From: Syncephalis fuscata S228 | Taxonomy: Eukaryota; Fungi; Zoopagomycota | DNA length: 64,000 bases | Assembly (NCBI GenBank): GCA_025786725.1 | Contig: JAHLTZ010000048.1 | Coordinates: forward strand, 62,001-126,000 | Reading direction: 5' to 3' | In this document: positions 1 through 13,082 of the stretch, piece after piece | Layout: each line of letters opens with the position of its first letter | How positions within the stretch are numbered: position 1 is the stretch's first letter | Notes under the pieces: model-generated | Seen by the model: only the letters and a program-made list of their open reading frames with translations | Told to the model about the DNA's origin: nothing | The model's database searches: none | Translations under genes and position numbers: made by a program

Positions 1-5835
<5,835 letters not shown>

Positions 5836-6251: not shown

Positions 6252-7580
6252 CTACTCGATTAGTTTGGCATAAGTCATCAGCTCTTCATCGGTAGTAAAA
6301 CGTTCATAGCATTCCTCGTCGATTGGAGTGCAAACTTCAATTGCACCTTTGGAAGCGCCTGGTGCTGGTGGAGTATCGAAAATAGTGACTGTTGATATAA
6401 TGGGATACATGTACCGACGATAACGAACTGGTCGGCCATCGCCAAAGTTCATGTCGTAATATCCTACCTTTGTCCAGTCTGTGCTGGAGAAATCAATACA
6501 GCTTATCCAGTTGGAATCTTTATTAACTATCGATGTGTCAGTGCCATCGTCTGTTTGCCCTAAAAAACTTTCTATGCTTTTTGCTTTGCCAGCGAGCACT
6601 GTTTGACGATATGCTGCAGCCACGTTGCCAAGTGTGTTATTTACAACCTGATCGGCCGGTATTATAAGACTCGAGGCGTGGAACACATTGCCGAAATAGT
6701 TATCGGGAAAGTTAGACCAGTGGGGGCGCATGTTAACAACAGAGAACATGCCTATGGTCTTGCTGTGGGGGATGTTTCTTGCGCGCACGCTTGCTCGCCA
6801 CATCAGCATTAGCACAACATCAAGCGTAGAAAACCATTTCTCTTTTCGTTCTTCTTCGGCAATCAAACCGCCTGCTGTGGTTTTTAACAGTTCAAGGCTT
6901 TCTGGACTAAATTTAAATATCACGACCTTTTTGTTGTTAACTTCGTGGGTAAAAATCGATTGATCATCATGTGGCGGCCTAGCCTTGTTTGCTGCGGCGC
7001 TGGCCTCCAAGCTTAAGTTAAAAAGCTTTCGATTATGATTTGGTGGCAAAGGAATGTCTCCGCGTGCGAATGCAGCCCATGCATTTAGTAGCAATGACCA
7101 ACCATATGCATCTGAGACCATATGGTGGCATGCTGTGCATATAACTAGGCCAGAGTTGTTTGCGAAGCGTGTCACACGGACAACAAATAGAGGCATTTCC
7201 TTAACCGTCCATGGCTCAATAGCTTGAAGCTCGGAAGAAATACTTTTCTGAGGCCAATCTGGCTCGAATTTTGAAATATCATCGTCCACTTGGGCTTCGG
7301 TATAAAGAACACCTTTGCTTGAAGGCTGGACTTCATAGGCATTGCTCTCAAGACGTACTATTTGGCCACATACGATTGGATATTGTTCGAGTGCCTTCCG
7401 AAGAGACTCAATTAGCACTTCAGCCGGCATAAAATTCGTCTTTTGCTGACTGTTTTTGTAGAAGGTAAGATTCTGTATACAGTTTGGACCGGGAATATAA
7501 TCGGCATGGCTCAATGGATGTGTTTGCGCTGCATCATAATTATCTGGCAACACCCATGTATCTTTATGACTTAAAATCAT
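6252..7580 (-). CDS. BAHD/transferase-family CoA-dependent acyltransferase (TRI101-like), single exon
   Basis: Uninterrupted ORF; the first ATG is at 7580 (the track's 7604 start is a TTG). It has the catalytic HxxxD (CHHMVSDAYG), NYFGN, and a DFGWG-like motif (DMNFGDGRP). Confidence 0.88.
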   Translation of the reverse strand: MILSHKDTWVLPDNYDAAQTHPLSHADYIPGPNCIQNLTFYKNSQQKTNFMPAEVLIESLRKALEQYPIVCGQIVRLESNAYEVQPSSKGVLYTEAQVDDDISKFEPDWPQKSISSELQAIEPWTVKEMPLFVVRVTRFANNSGLVICTACHHMVSDAYGWSLLLNAWAAFARGDIPLPPNHNRKLFNLSLEASAAANKARPPHDDQSIFTHEVNNKKVVIFKFSPESLELLKTTAGGLIAEEERKEKWFSTLDVVLMLMWRASVRARNIPHSKTIGMFSVVNMRPHWSNFPDNYFGNVFHASSLIIPADQVVNNTLGNVAAAYRQTVLAGKAKSIESFLGQTDDGTDTSIVNKDSNWISCIDFSSTDWTKVGYYDMNFGDGRPVRYRRYMYPIISTVTIFDTPPAPGASKGAIEVCTPIDEECYERFTTDEELMTYAKLIE

Positions 7581-8526
7581 ATTGCTAGCAGTAAAATGGG
7601 TCAAAGGAAATATTAACTAAAGAAAAGGCTATGGTGTCGACTTTGCAGTTAGGTTGATGGATACCCAATACCAGGATGTTCAACATTGACGCTGAATTTA
7701 TAGGCAACAGTGTCTAGATCAATTGTAGTTTATCATGAAAAGTGAGCAATGCAGCAAACAGGTTTACATGTAACCGCCAAATCATATGCTAAAGCAATAG
7801 AAAAAATTGTGCAATTTATGTATACTATTAACAAAGATCAGTCTTTTTGGTCTAGATTGAATTCCAAAAAAGGCAGGGTGTTAACTTGAGGCAGCTACCT
7901 TATACCAGTTGGCACATTCTAGAATTATGCGGCAATGGGATCTAGAACAATCAATGAAAGCACATGCACTATCGCTGCACTGAAATAATAGCTTTTGGGT
8001 TTAAATTCAATAAATTTTGCCATCATGCTATGACTTGAATACGACAATACTATGTGTATTTTGGTAGTTATTACATTGTAAATATACATAAGACTACAGC
8101 TTTAATTATTGTATACATGTATTTTTTAAATACTAGATACAAGTAGTTTGAATATTGCGTATAGTCGATACACAAATTAAATAGCCCATTAAAGTATCAA
8201 TCAATTATTTAAAACTGTAAACTGTGTAAAATAATCGACATTTTACATATAATATATGTGCTCGACCGGCAATTGCTTAGTATGGAGCATTATTGTTAAA
8301 TGAATATCGATTAGAAATTTATGTATAAATATGTATAAGTGATGTATATTGTTTATGGCAGACAAATTATAAAATGCTTATAGCTGCTCAAATATAAGAA
8401 TTAAGTATAATACTAGTAATTTATTTAATCGTTTTTTAATTTATTTCTGCTATTGTTTTTGTGAACAGTTGGTTAAAATTTATTATTATTTAGTGTTAAA
8501 TGACTAACATTTATCTATTCATTATA

Positions 8527-9902: not shown

Positions 9903-11033
9903 TTAATAGTCATCGTCGTTGTATTCACCGTAGCTGTCGTTCTCTTTATCACCGCCATCAGCTCCATATGAGTCGTTGTTGTTGTCATAAGAGTCGGCGT
10001 CATCATATGATTCGTTGTCATAAGACTTGTCATCGTATGATTTTACATCACCATCGTAATACTTGGCGCCATCATCATAATTTGCTGCGCCATCATCATA
10101 CTCGTTATGGTCATCGTAGACACCGCCTTCGTGGCCATATCCTTTGTGATAATCTTCATGATCAAATAGACCGTGATGACCATCGTGACCAAATAAGCCA
10201 TGATGGCCGTCGTGACCAAATGGACCGTGATGACCATCGTGACCGAATGGACCGTGATGGCCATCATGACCAAATGGACCGTGATGACCGAATAAGCCGT
10301 GATGACCGTCGTGGCCGAATGGGCCGTGATGACCGTATGGAATATGTGGGCCATAGGCAAATGGACCTTTGTGATGTGGATTATGATGTCCATGATGCTT
10401 GGGGAAGTCATCATGGTGTGGATTGTGATGTCCATGAGGCTTGAATTCGCCATGGTGTTCTGGCTCACTAAGCTTATGGCAAATTGGGACACCACAGGCT
10501 TTGCAGGTATGTGCAGTAAGTGAGCAGCCATATCCATATGGGCAGCCCATGCAAAGAACATGTGAACAGTCTACGCACTCAGTTGTAGGGGGAGTGATTG
10601 GTGGTCGTATAGTTGGAGGCTCAGTTGTTGGAGGAGTTGTTGGAGGTTGTACAGTTGGAGGCTCAGTTGTTGGTGGCGTAGTTGGAGGTTGTACGGTTGG
10701 AGGCTCAGTTGTTGGAGGCGTAGTTGGTGGCTGTACGGTTGGAGGTTGTACGGTTGGAGGCTCAGTTGTTGGAGGCGTAGTTGGTGGCTGTACGGTTGGA
10801 GGCTCAGTTGTTGGAGGCGTAGTTGGAGGCTCAGTAGTTGGAGGCTCAGTAGTTGGCGGCGTAGTTGGTGGCTCAGTAGTTGGAGGAAGTGGAGCAATAG
10901 CTGGTGGATCTTGCTGCTGGAAAACAAGGTCATTTCCTACTGCTATATCTCTCTTTAAAGGAGCAACAGCATTGCTTAGTGTCGCTGCAGACACCAGCAA
11001 AGATACTAAAAGTATAGTGCAGCCAAACTTCAT
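9903..11033 (-). CDS. Secreted modular protein A: signal peptide, Pro/Thr stalk, 8-Cys Opy2-like domain, His/Gly repeats, Asp/Tyr tail
   Basis: Single-exon 376-aa ORF. Hydrophobic N-terminus (MKFGCTILLVSLLVSAATLSNA), a KR dibasic site, PPTT/EPPT/VQPPT repeats, CVDC..C..C..C..C..C..C at 10479-10577, GHDGHHG(P/L)F repeats and a YDD-rich C-terminus. No TM segment or GPI-like tail. Confidence 0.88.
   Translation of the reverse strand: MKFGCTILLVSLLVSAATLSNAVAPLKRDIAVGNDLVFQQQDPPAIAPLPPTTEPPTTPPTTEPPTTEPPTTPPTTEPPTVQPPTTPPTTEPPTVQPPTVQPPTTPPTTEPPTVQPPTTPPTTEPPTVQPPTTPPTTEPPTIRPPITPPTTECVDCSHVLCMGCPYGYGCSLTAHTCKACGVPICHKLSEPEHHGEFKPHGHHNPHHDDFPKHHGHHNPHHKGPFAYGPHIPYGHHGPFGHDGHHGLFGHHGPFGHDGHHGPFGHDGHHGPFGHDGHHGLFGHDGHHGLFDHEDYHKGYGHEGGVYDDHNEYDDGAANYDDGAKYYDGDVKSYDDKSYDNESYDDADSYDNNNDSYGADGGDKENDSYGEYNDDDY
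10160..10335 (-). repeat. Coding 27-bp tandem repeat GHDGHHG(P/L)F in protein A
   Basis: Repeated ccgtgatgaccatcgtgacc-like units on the + strand. Confidence 0.9.
10582..10885 (-). repeat. Coding tandem repeat (PPTT/EPPT/VQPPT) in protein A
   Basis: Recurrent gttggagg/gttggtgg 12-15 bp units on the + strand. Confidence 0.9.
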
Positions 11034-11243
11034 TTTGGCTACAATAATAAGTTATTTATTTGCAGTATTGATTTGTATAATAAAACTAGTCAATGTTGGA
11101 TATAATTTAAAAATGTGATAACGCCAGACTGGTATTTATGCAACAACTAAGCGCAATTAAAAATATATTCAAATGGTTCTAAGATTGTTCCTGCATGTCT
11201 CGTTTCCCTGGCTTGTTCAGGCGAGTGTAAGTCCTATGTATGT

Positions 11244-11496
11244 AATCGGCCCCTTTGTAAATGAAATCGGCCCCTGTTAAACTTACTATAACTGTATTGG
11301 TAAAGTTTCCTTAGCAATGGCTTTATTGCCAATCAAATCGCCGTTTAAGGCTACTCAGGGGCAATAGCGCCAAAGGAGATGAGTAAATTGGGAAACGCTT
11401 TGACTACGGGCTCAATACATATACAAAGGAGTACGCTTTAGATGCATGGTTGTTAGGATAACCGAAGCTGTGTGCTTTGCCTGCCTGTACCCCCCT
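11244..11496. promoter_or_regulatory. Cluster of four STRE-like CCCCT/AGGGG motifs, including an 11-bp direct repeat AATCGGCCCCT, in the divergent intergenic region
   Basis: CCCCT at 11250, 11271 and 11492; AGGGG at 11357; AATCGGCCCCT at 11244 and 11265. Function is inferred from yeast Msn2/4 STREs. Confidence 0.4.
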
Positions 11497-12100
11497 GTAA
11501 TGTAGAATATCCATGCTGAACATGGATAGAGATACAGGTGTTATATAACATTATCTATTATTGAATTGTTTTACTGATTGACTGATTAATAACTAATGAT
11601 AGTATTTTAGTTATTATAAAAGTGCAAAGTTGATATTTAATTTGAGGACTGATTTATTTTGATATCATTAACTTTATAATCAACAAAACAATAGAGTATT
11701 GTATTTTATTGTGCTGTTTATTAGCTAATCCAATTTATAACTAATAAGAAATTACTAAACAAAAATATTTATATTAATAAATAATTTAAAGCATTAAAAC
11801 ATTTAAAACATTGTGCTCATATTACTAAAATGGGTAAATCGATCTACGTAGTCTGTACAATAATTACAAAAGCAACATGTAAATAAGATACAGTGATATT
11901 ACATCATATTTTACATCACACTGAAGGTCATTTATACACATTAATTTGAATCTTGGCATTGGCCAAGTCTTGGCGAGCAATGATATAGTAAATGTAAATA
12001 AATTCATTTTTATTCTCAGGAGTTTTTTAATTATAATATAAATATTAAGCTTAGTGTTATGCGTTGACACTCGTTGTTAAAACATAGTAAACCGTTAATA

Positions 12101-12774
12101 ATGCAGTATTTCTCTCTATTTGTGGCGTCACTTGCGTTTGTTGCTTCCATACACGGCGCAAATGCTGCGGCCGTACAGCAAACTGATGTAGCCTTACCAC
12201 AAGCCGATGTAACTTTACCGCAAACTGATGGCCGTACTCAGTCATCAGGTCTCAACTGTTTAAATTGCCCTCTTGCCGTAAGCTGCAGTTCTTGTCCAAC
12301 AGGTTTTGTATGTGTCGTCAAACCAGGCAACTGTTACGTATGCCCAACAGCGGTATGCGTCCGGCCTCATAACAATGGCGACGAAGATCCATTTGATAAA
12401 GACCATCATCTTGGCGACTTTGATCCATTCCACAGGGACCATCACTTTGGCGGCGAAGATCCATTCAACAGGACCATCACTTTGGCGGCGAAGATCCATT
12501 CAACAGAGACCATCACTTTGGCGGTTTTGATCCATTCCACAGGGACCATCACTTTGGCGGTTTTGATCCATTTGGCAACCATTTTCCACATGATCCATTC
12601 TACGCAGGAGCACTACTTCCTTGGTGGCTGCACCAACGACCATACGGTGACTGGTCATGGGACCATGATCATAACGATCTTGATCACTTTGGCGGTGGAC
12701 TGGATCCATTCGATAACGATGAAGAGCACTATAAAAACAAACAAGTAAATGGCGTACAGTCTCCTACTGTATAA
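12101..12774 (+). CDS. Secreted modular protein B: signal peptide, 8-Cys Opy2-like domain, DPF(H/N)RDHHFGG repeats (1-bp frameshift at ~12471)
   Basis: ATG at 12101 (MQYFSLFVASLAFVASIHGANA) and CLNC..C..C..C..C..C..C at 12257-12358, followed by 36-bp repeats. One unit reads caggacc where the others read cagggacc or cagagacc. Restoring that base keeps the repeat frame open to ..DEEHYKNKQVNGVQSPTV* (TAA 12772-12774). Confidence 0.82.
12387..12573 (+). repeat. Coding 36-bp tandem repeat (DPFxRDHHFGG[EF]) in protein B
   Basis: About five copies of gatccattcNacagNgaccatcactttggcggN. Confidence 0.9.
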
Positions 12775-13082
12775 TTTCAACTATGTGTTCCAATTGAGCT
12801 ATACTAAATCATTAAATAAAACTTCAATTCTCCAGTTTATTGAATGTGATATCGCTATCATTTCATTCCATATTTATTTATTTGCTATAAATACTATAGC
12901 ATTAGTAATAACTGCAACGACAGCAATGGCCGACTGCACAATGTCGTCATGAGCCCTGGCCACCACTATTATTCCATATATTGTCTTATCGCTTCTTTCA
13001 TCTATCGCTTCTTCCTTTCACTCCACTGTATTCATGTGACAAGAAGACTGTAACGGGTTTTTCTTAAATATATATCGCATTC

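Follow-up and report, generated by a model that had tools for sequence, protein, structure and literature searches.

What might two divergently transcribed genes, each apparently encoding a secreted protein in which a small eight-cysteine module is joined to a long histidine-rich block, contribute to a fungus that lives on other fungi? The two genes, here called A and B, lie head to head at 9903-12774 of a 64-kb piece of contig C315 (the window, to which all positions refer unless another contig is named) in the 29.4-Mb genome assembly of Syncephalis fuscata. This species is an obligate haustorial parasite of other fungi, and the original prediction, made from the letters of the window alone, had rightly guessed at a mycoparasite. 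Of the molecules with which zoopagalean mycoparasites act on the fungi they parasitise, almost nothing is known. Our analysis suggests that A and B are real, transcribed and lineage-specific genes, whose products would be released into the secretory route with neither a membrane anchor nor a glycosylphosphatidylinositol (GPI) signal. Judged from profile and predicted fold, B is a solid member of the Opy2 domain family (Pfam PF09463), whereas A appears to be a divergent and marginal member in which little beyond the cysteine frame is kept. The architecture appears to be a novel arrangement of a known domain within a lineage-specific family.

Gene A is intronless, as had been predicted, and the following features were read along its product. 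Hydrophobicity was averaged over a 19-residue window (KD19).

9903-11033, minus strand: coding sequence of gene A, a single open reading frame (ORF) in one exon, 376 residues and a stop codon.
10968-11033, minus strand: signal peptide, residues 1-22 (MKFGCTILLVSLLVSAATLSNA), called by hand; KD19 1.93 at residues 5-23, small residues at -3 and -1.
10950-10955, minus strand: Lys-Arg, residues 27-28, a possible Kex2 pro-peptide site; from reading of the sequence, processing putative.
10578-10901, minus strand: Pro/Thr repeats (PPTTE/PPTVQ), a mucin-like stalk of about 108 residues (45-152); 42% Pro, 34% Thr, 42-nt tandem units.
10479-10577, minus strand: eight-cysteine Opy2-like module, residues 153-185 (CVDCSHVLCMGCPYGYGCSLTAHTCKACGVPIC, 33 residues); PF09463 match and cysteine register.
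10119-10478, minus strand: His/Gly/Phe block, residues 186-305 (120 residues); 31% His, 23% Gly, 27/54-nt tandem units.
10164-10334, minus strand: within this block, 19 unbroken Gly-X-Y triplets (GHH/GPF/GHD/GLF), residues 234-290; Pfam Collagen match.
9906-10118, minus strand: acidic Tyr/Asp tail, residues 306-376 (71 residues); 31% Asp, 18% Tyr, isoelectric point (pI) 4.05.

Gene B starts from the ATG at 12101 on the plus strand and has the same layout as A, and its stop at 12772-12774 is reached only with a one-base frame correction.

11034-12100: intergenic region shared by the divergent genes A and B, 1067 bp from ATG to ATG.
12101-12166, plus strand: signal peptide, residues 1-22 (MQYFSLFVASLAFVASIHGANA), called by hand; KD19 1.6.
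12167-12256, plus strand: linker of 7-residue units (QTDVALP/QADVTLP); period 21 at 12179-12230 in Tandem Repeats Finder.
12257-12358, plus strand: eight-cysteine Opy2-like module (CLNCPLAVSCSSCPTGFVCVVKPGNCYVCPTAVC); PF09463 match, own-genome profile and predicted fold.
12386-12591, plus strand: 12-residue DPFxRDHHFGGx repeats in 36-nt units; tandem repeat analysis.
12458-12492, plus strand: short, frame-shifting repeat unit 3 of 35 nt; one G missing at 12471-12472.
12592-12774, plus strand: degenerate repeats, a Trp/Tyr patch and an acidic tail, in frame 3 only, with the stop at 12772-12774.

Both signal peptides were called from hydrophobicity and cleavage motif by hand, and inspection in this way bore out the prediction of one on each protein: a hydrophobic core is followed by SNA/V in A and ANA/A in B. 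The tandem repeats and acidic tails that had been described were likewise found. Past the signal peptide, no membrane helix was detected in A (KD19 maximum 0.77) or in frame-corrected B (maximum 1.41, inside the cysteine module), and the C-termini, hydrophobic in neither protein, make a GPI signal unlikely in both.

The assignment to Opy2 rests on the module. The cysteine strings quoted in the original prediction are exact, and when the two modules are aligned with 16 others of the same genome, all eight of their cysteines fall into register in the frame C-x2-C-x4-7-C-x2-4-C-x5-C-x6-C-x2-C-x4-C. PF09463 has 35 positions and a gathering cut-off of 22.1 bits, and its match spans the entire profile (1-35) in A as well as B. 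Gene B lies below the cut-off as a whole protein (21.8 bits, E 2e-4) and above it as an isolated match in a six-frame search of the genome (24.1 bits, E per genome 0.002), while A falls below it in both searches (15.5 bits, E 0.023, and 19.5 bits, E per genome 0.058). A profile built from the 16 other modules, with A and B left out, gave B 28.9 bits, against 11.2 bits for the best of 2000 shuffles that preserved the cysteines. The claim of an Opy2-type module is therefore supported for B and marginal for A.

In an alignment of 18 modules (A, B and the 16 others, the canonical Opy2 gene among them), six cysteines are invariant, and the identity of the A module to the others is 27-36%. Three modules (L014, L015 and L018), each the first module of a multi-module protein, lack Cys1 and Cys6 and keep the other six; since the two are lost together, a Cys1-Cys6 disulfide is suggested. 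These modules also point to a six-cysteine subtype.

AlphaFold models made with the 18-module alignment had mean confidence (pLDDT) values of 85.4 for B and 85.3 for A and showed the same two strands. When the B model was compared with the ESM Atlas, the best match was a cluster of Opy2 N-terminal domains (TM-score 0.72, root-mean-square deviation 1.8 Å over 42 residues), 90% of whose members carry PF09463 and most of which are from Ascomycota; both compared folds are predictions. No solved structure resembling the module was found in profile, Foldseek or VIA-align searches: the sequence-profile search of the PDB gave only a weak match to a cysteine-rich eggshell membrane protein (CREMP, 9pgb, E 0.009), Foldseek against the PDB gave only weak furin-repeat/R-spondin rows with E above 3, and a wide VIA-align search gave nothing at Z of 2 or higher.

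The Opy2 likeness is at the domain level. The original prediction had described Opy2 as a single-pass membrane anchor whose cysteine-rich (CR) domain engages signalling mucins, and this is correct: the CR domain of yeast Opy2 binds the HMH domain of Msb2/Hkr1, which is the only known activity of the CR domain (PMC13233613). Neither A nor frame-corrected B has the single-pass helix that follows the CR domain in Opy2, nor any cytoplasmic part that could hold a Ste50-binding tail, and a canonical anchored Opy2 is encoded on another contig. A and B are not Opy2 orthologues.

A search of the genome, proposed with the original prediction as a way of sizing the family, found about 21 modules in at least 11 genes, and only one gene has a membrane helix.

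Contig C279, 1 module: canonical Opy2, with the CR domain, a Ser-rich region, a membrane helix (IAIGGVCGGIGVAAIIAGLVWY) and then RQKRRNK.
Contig C1, gene 1, 4 modules: signal peptide; divergent from gene 2, about 4 kb away.
Contig C1, gene 2, 3 modules: signal peptide.
Contig C350, two tandem genes, 2 modules each: signal peptide.
Contig C235, 2 modules: signal peptide.
Contig C307, 1 module: module in a separate exon, N-terminus not resolved.
Contig C361, 1 module: probable signal-peptide exon upstream.
Contig C339, with a near-copy on C336, 1 module: signal peptide, (HFEGHHGGYPGEHHxx)n repeats and a long acidic end.
Contig C315, gene A, 1 module: Pro/Thr stalk and His/Gly block.
Contig C315, gene B, 1 module: DPFxRDHHFGGx repeats.

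The arrangement of these genes indicates that the module family is growing by local duplication. Most of its members are plain small secreted proteins with 1-4 modules, and it may be that the lineage just uses the module widely as a disulfide building block. The two C1 genes, at 163349-163938 (minus) and 168085-168471 (plus), are divergent like A and B. The canonical Opy2 gene, at C279:240702-243806 (minus), requires a frame change at an A5 run between its Ser-rich part and its helix, likely a second homopolymer indel in the assembly.

The gene on C339 is a third one that combines a CR module with His-rich repeats, and its module scored 24.4-30.3 bits with PF09463. Its copies on C336 (105-3209, 590 residues) and C339 (281505-284609, 558 residues) are near-identical, set apart by two 16-residue repeat units and a small number of substitutions. 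As the C336 copy sits right at the beginning of its contig, the pair could reflect haplotigs, overlap or recent duplication. The original prediction had seen in A and B old paralogs that independently kept a His-rich block. The finding of a third such gene supports the idea of old paralogs that retained such a block. Pairwise alignments among A, B and the third gene, however, extend past the module into the first part of the His block (E 6e-4, 9e-7 and 2e-4), so that a single ancestral CR-His layout, with repeats turned over later, would be the simplest reading and is favoured over independent gains. Repeat number is labile in this group, and no second copy of the His-rich unit of A or of B was found in the genome.

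Relatives were sought outside the genome in two protein sets, a word-indexed collection of 5.8 billion proteins and 1.84 billion representatives that were searched exhaustively. The word search gave no match for A (residues 150-310) or B (residues 1-124), and the only match of the third gene was its own entry, hypothetical protein BDF19DRAFT_434964 [Syncephalis fuscata]. An exhaustive phmmer search with residues 148-376 of A returned 1547 matches (E up to 0.001); the best 150 included no relative of the cysteine module and no self match, and all of them lay on residues 68-187 of the query, the His/Gly stretch, the four inspected being collagen-like proteins of bacteria or viruses. A feature search of the ESM Atlas with A and the three-module paralogue gave no usable match, and the B tail had none in the PDB. 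Because no self match was obtained, A and B appear to be absent from the searched protein sets, which do hold another protein of the same genome. The search tools may, however, leave out records of this genome, and with this limit the exact products of A and of B as assembled are likewise not on record. No paper was found that deals with PF09463, with secreted Opy2 domains or with Opy2 in either Zoopagomycota or Mucoromycota, and the secreted layout of an Opy2 domain with His-rich repeats appears to be undescribed.

Evidence from reads consisted of contigs of three small public runs (X1, X2 and X3). Run X1 may be RNA by its label. Its depth was 0 in most intergenic bins, 0.7-3 directly upstream of the ATG of A, 11 on A, and about 350-3600 in bins across most of the coding region of B (1400-3600 from the cysteine module to the tail); a 768-nt contig at 9864-10631 is colinear with the genome and has no joints. 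This pattern fits RNA and not DNA. Contigs of this probable RNA run cover both genes, B at very high depth, and A and B are probably transcribed. Contigs of X1 and X2 also cover 10954-11308, reaching up to 275 nt upstream of the ATG of A, which may be a long 5' untranslated region (UTR) of A or DNA. Downstream of the stop of B, a 654-nt X1 contig of depth 158 enters 12830-12900, either as a long 3' UTR or as a separate transcript before the NF-YA gene (13906). Reads differ from the assembly at 10560 (His158 in A) and 12382 (Asp94 in B), in both cases synonymously at the third codon position. At 12382, C and T are about half-and-half in X1, which suggests two haplotypes in the sample, and a contig of X3, from another study and with a depth of about 3.5, has T here and lacks one 36-nt unit (12432-12467).

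The prediction of two intronless, divergent genes about 1.07 kb apart stands for A and for the gap between the genes, but the ORF of B is broken in the assembly. The repeat units of B start at 12386, 12422, 12458, 12493 and 12529, with spacings of 36, 36, 35 and 36 nt, and the short unit reads AACAGG-ACC where the others have CACAGGGACC or AACAGAGACC. Because this unit has 35 nt, frame 1 runs out of frame after it and ends at a stop at 12746-12748, and the degenerate DPF/HF motifs past the break are found in frame 3 only. An intron as the source of the frame change is ruled out, as the stretch from the last frame-3 stop to the shift contains no GT, and no GT...AG intron fits the break. One X1 contig has a G inserted behind 12470 (depth 576 of 2175), which restores the frame. 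Since a frame-intact transcript form exists, an assembly error or an allelic variant is the likeliest explanation of the break, and we consider it fairly probable that it is either an error or an allele with an intact partner. The short and the restored forms may both be alleles; alternatively, the short form is an error that recurs at low depth. The out-of-frame text of B at 12472-12748 is hydrophobic (KD19 2.0 at residues 138-156 and 1.78 at residues 189-207), so that the absence of a membrane helix, claimed for both proteins, is valid for A and the corrected frame of B and not for B as assembled. From the assembled ORF, a naive prediction would make B a membrane protein with a loose resemblance to the CR-then-helix order of canonical Opy2; the hydrophobic text is probably a by-product of the codon shift. 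The two frame pieces of B were set end to end for the calculation of pI, and the joined sequence was used in no search or fold run.

What the proteins do can be proposed from their parts. By analogy with His-rich proteins elsewhere, we tentatively read A and B as secreted, metal- and pH-responsive matrix, adhesive or metal-scavenging proteins at the parasite surface, a reading to which we give somewhat less than an even chance. The proteins would enter the secretory pathway by their signal peptides and be released. The CR module, one small domain with four predicted disulfides, may then serve as a stable protein-binding handle, and the His/Gly/aromatic/acidic repeat region directly after it is probably disordered. 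Through its HH pairs (13 in A), the His block could bind divalent metals (Zn, Cu, Ni), as HH-rich repeats do with the same metals in histidine-rich glycoprotein, in Pra1 and, as proposed, in the fungal effector Dld1; its charge would shift sharply between pH 7 and pH 5, from a calculated -6 to +26 for the block of A. In the proposal, the combination of a CR handle with a metal-binding, charge-switching block would yield metal-scavenging or metal-buffering, pH-switchable matrix or adhesive proteins on the hyphal or haustorial surface, and in A the Pro/Thr stalk, if glycosylated, would be a spacer. A secreted His/Ala-rich fungal protein, Dld1, acts on metal homeostasis (cited through PMC9610748). 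A cationic, histatin-like antifungal peptide was also considered and judged unlikely, the repeats being net acidic at pH 7.

Other functions have to be weighed against this one. The original prediction offered a decoy or ligand for mucin sensors, or a wall-tethering module. In the decoy reading, soluble CR modules would engage the HMH domain of Msb2/Hkr1-type mucins, of the host or of the parasite itself, and thereby alter high-osmolarity glycerol (HOG) or filamentation mitogen-activated protein kinase (MAPK) signalling at the parasitic interface, or tether the protein to the mucin. The module is of Opy2 type and HMH binding is its one known activity (PMC13233613), the organism is an obligate mycoparasite that has expanded the module in anchorless secreted proteins while keeping one canonical anchored copy, and B is apparently very highly transcribed. 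We nevertheless consider a decoy improbable: binding, localisation and host response are hypothetical, the modules share little with canonical Opy2 past the cysteine frame, the small multi-module proteins suggest a generic structural building block, and a decoy would have no evident use for the His-rich block. A more specific form of the idea, in which the parasite has turned the ligand-binding domain of its own Opy2 into a soluble secreted family and delivers A, B and the C339 protein to the host interface, where CR would bind host HMH domains of Msb2/Hkr1 type and blunt or hijack osmostress or filamentation signalling with the His block as a pH/metal switch, would be very improbable. Structural proteins of the wall or spore surface, with His/Tyr/Gly/aromatic repeats that are cross-linked (dityrosine, His-metal bridges) or self-assembling, like those of other His/Gly-rich proteins that harden or coacervate, and with CR as a folded end domain, are unlikely, although far from negligible. 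They would suit a layout in which Pro/Thr stalk, His/Gly block and Tyr/Asp tail follow one another as in a block copolymer, the apparently very deep transcript coverage of B, the fast change of repeat number (one unit fewer in the X3 form of B, two units between C336 and C339) and the weak module-profile match to the eggshell membrane protein; however, neither a GPI signal nor a Pir repeat nor any other known motif for wall linkage is present in the proteins, searches showed no homology to known wall proteins, and B has few Tyr. That the His block of A folds into a short triple helix of collagen type, so that A would be a fibrous trimer at the surface, is likewise doubtful to the point of being improbable. 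The 19 triplets are unbroken, Pfam Collagen (PF01391) scores 34.5 bits on A against a cut-off of 27.2, and the best 150 exhaustive matches all fall on the Gly-X-Y stretch, with collagen-like proteins as the four inspected. Pro, however, occupies only 4 of the 38 X/Y positions, the remainder being bulky His and Phe, Asp or Leu; the triplet period follows automatically from a 9-residue repeat unit; and since B (no Collagen match) and the third paralogue lack a Gly-X-Y period, it is not a property of the family.

Further points weigh against reading A and B as intact, secreted and metal-responsive members of one family. The module of A is under the Pfam cut-off and weak on the own-genome profile (10.3 bits, with 1 in 1000 shuffles of A scoring higher), no sequence relation links the His-rich units of A, B and the C339 gene to one another, and with no known orthologues conservation cannot be used. 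Signal peptides are hand calls, and metal binding, secretion and localisation are predictions from sequence; A and B are both net acidic overall, and a non-metal role, for instance in self-assembly or cross-linking, fits equally well. The RNA status of X1 is a guess, and contig depth is a poor measure of expression. For B, a real frameshifted allele is possible. About three quarters of the X1 depth at 12470 is without the extra G, and the short GG form stands in the assembly and again in the X3 contig of a second study, there at a joint; in addition, the shifted stop lies 26 nt before the normal one in an intronless gene, for which mRNA decay would not be expected. We still consider it unlikely that B is a recently frameshifted allele, whether a pseudogene or a still-transcribed variant, with a protein ending in the out-of-frame hydrophobic text, given that the X1 contig of depth 576 restores the frame, that the DPF/HF motifs go on in frame 3 only, that the assembly has other homopolymer frame breaks and that X3 has a depth of just 3.5.

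A cluster of secreted-protein genes around the pair was rejected, as the neighbours are a BAHD-type acyltransferase, a methyltransferase, NF-YA and an RRP5-like gene. The acyltransferase, a 450-residue ORF at 6252-7604 (minus) with a match to Pfam Transferase (E 9e-45), is of a type that is uncommon in zygomycete-grade fungi.

Whichever function applies, the family to which A and B belong is a concrete and apparently highly expressed set of secreted proteins. For their folded domain a single class of binding partners is known in fungi, the signalling mucins, which gives a directly testable hypothesis, and from the His-rich blocks one may suspect that metals are captured, or assembly is triggered by pH, at the interface. 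The mechanism is attractive and testable, and hypothetical throughout. The Opy2 CR domain can occur outside the context of a membrane anchor, and in multi-copy arrays, which bears on how PF09463 is to be read in annotation. As A and B seem to be absent from the searched public protein sets, secretome surveys of this genome would probably miss them.

Comparison with known systems places the two proteins between several groups. With the Opy2 anchor of S. cerevisiae (PF09463) they share the eight-cysteine frame, a full-length profile match and a predicted small two-strand disulfide fold; unlike it, they appear to be secreted, carry His-rich repeats and lack a membrane helix, a Ser-rich juxtamembrane region and a Ste50-binding tail, and the canonical copy is found on C279. 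Collagen-like proteins (PF01391), such as MCL1 of Metarhizium, resemble A in the 19 Gly-X-Y triplets that score above the Pfam cut-off, but the block of A is Pro-poor and rich in His and Phe, a triple helix would be hypothetical, and B has no Gly-X-Y period. Histidine-rich glycoprotein, with its GHHPH repeats, and the zincophore Pra1 also have HH tandem repeats beside disulfide-rich domains and behave in a metal- and pH-dependent manner; they are animal or ascomycete proteins to which no homology was detected, so the likeness is one of analogy only. DELD proteins are Ala-rich and helical, end in RSIDELD and have no cysteine module. Dld1, an effector of the DELD family from Serendipita indica (Nostadt 2020, cited through PMC9610748), is similar to A and B in that it is secreted by a fungus living as a symbiont or parasite, has His at regular spacing and is proposed to act on metal ions. 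There is no sequence relation between them; A and B have no RSIDELD motif, and Ala is outside the eight commonest residues of their His-rich blocks. Closer relatives are found within the genome itself. The protein BDF19DRAFT_434964 (C339/C336) is annotated, unlike A and B, which the protein collections did not yield. It differs in having HFEGHHGGYPGEHHxx as its repeat unit, an additional region with Cys and a long acidic stretch at the C-terminus, and resembles A and B in its signal peptide, single CR module, His-rich tandem repeats and acidic region. The secreted proteins of C1, C350, C235, C307 and C361 have 1-4 modules and no His-rich block, and A scores much lower than they do on the module profile, yet they share with A and B the combination of a signal peptide and the module, the lack of an anchor, and local duplication.

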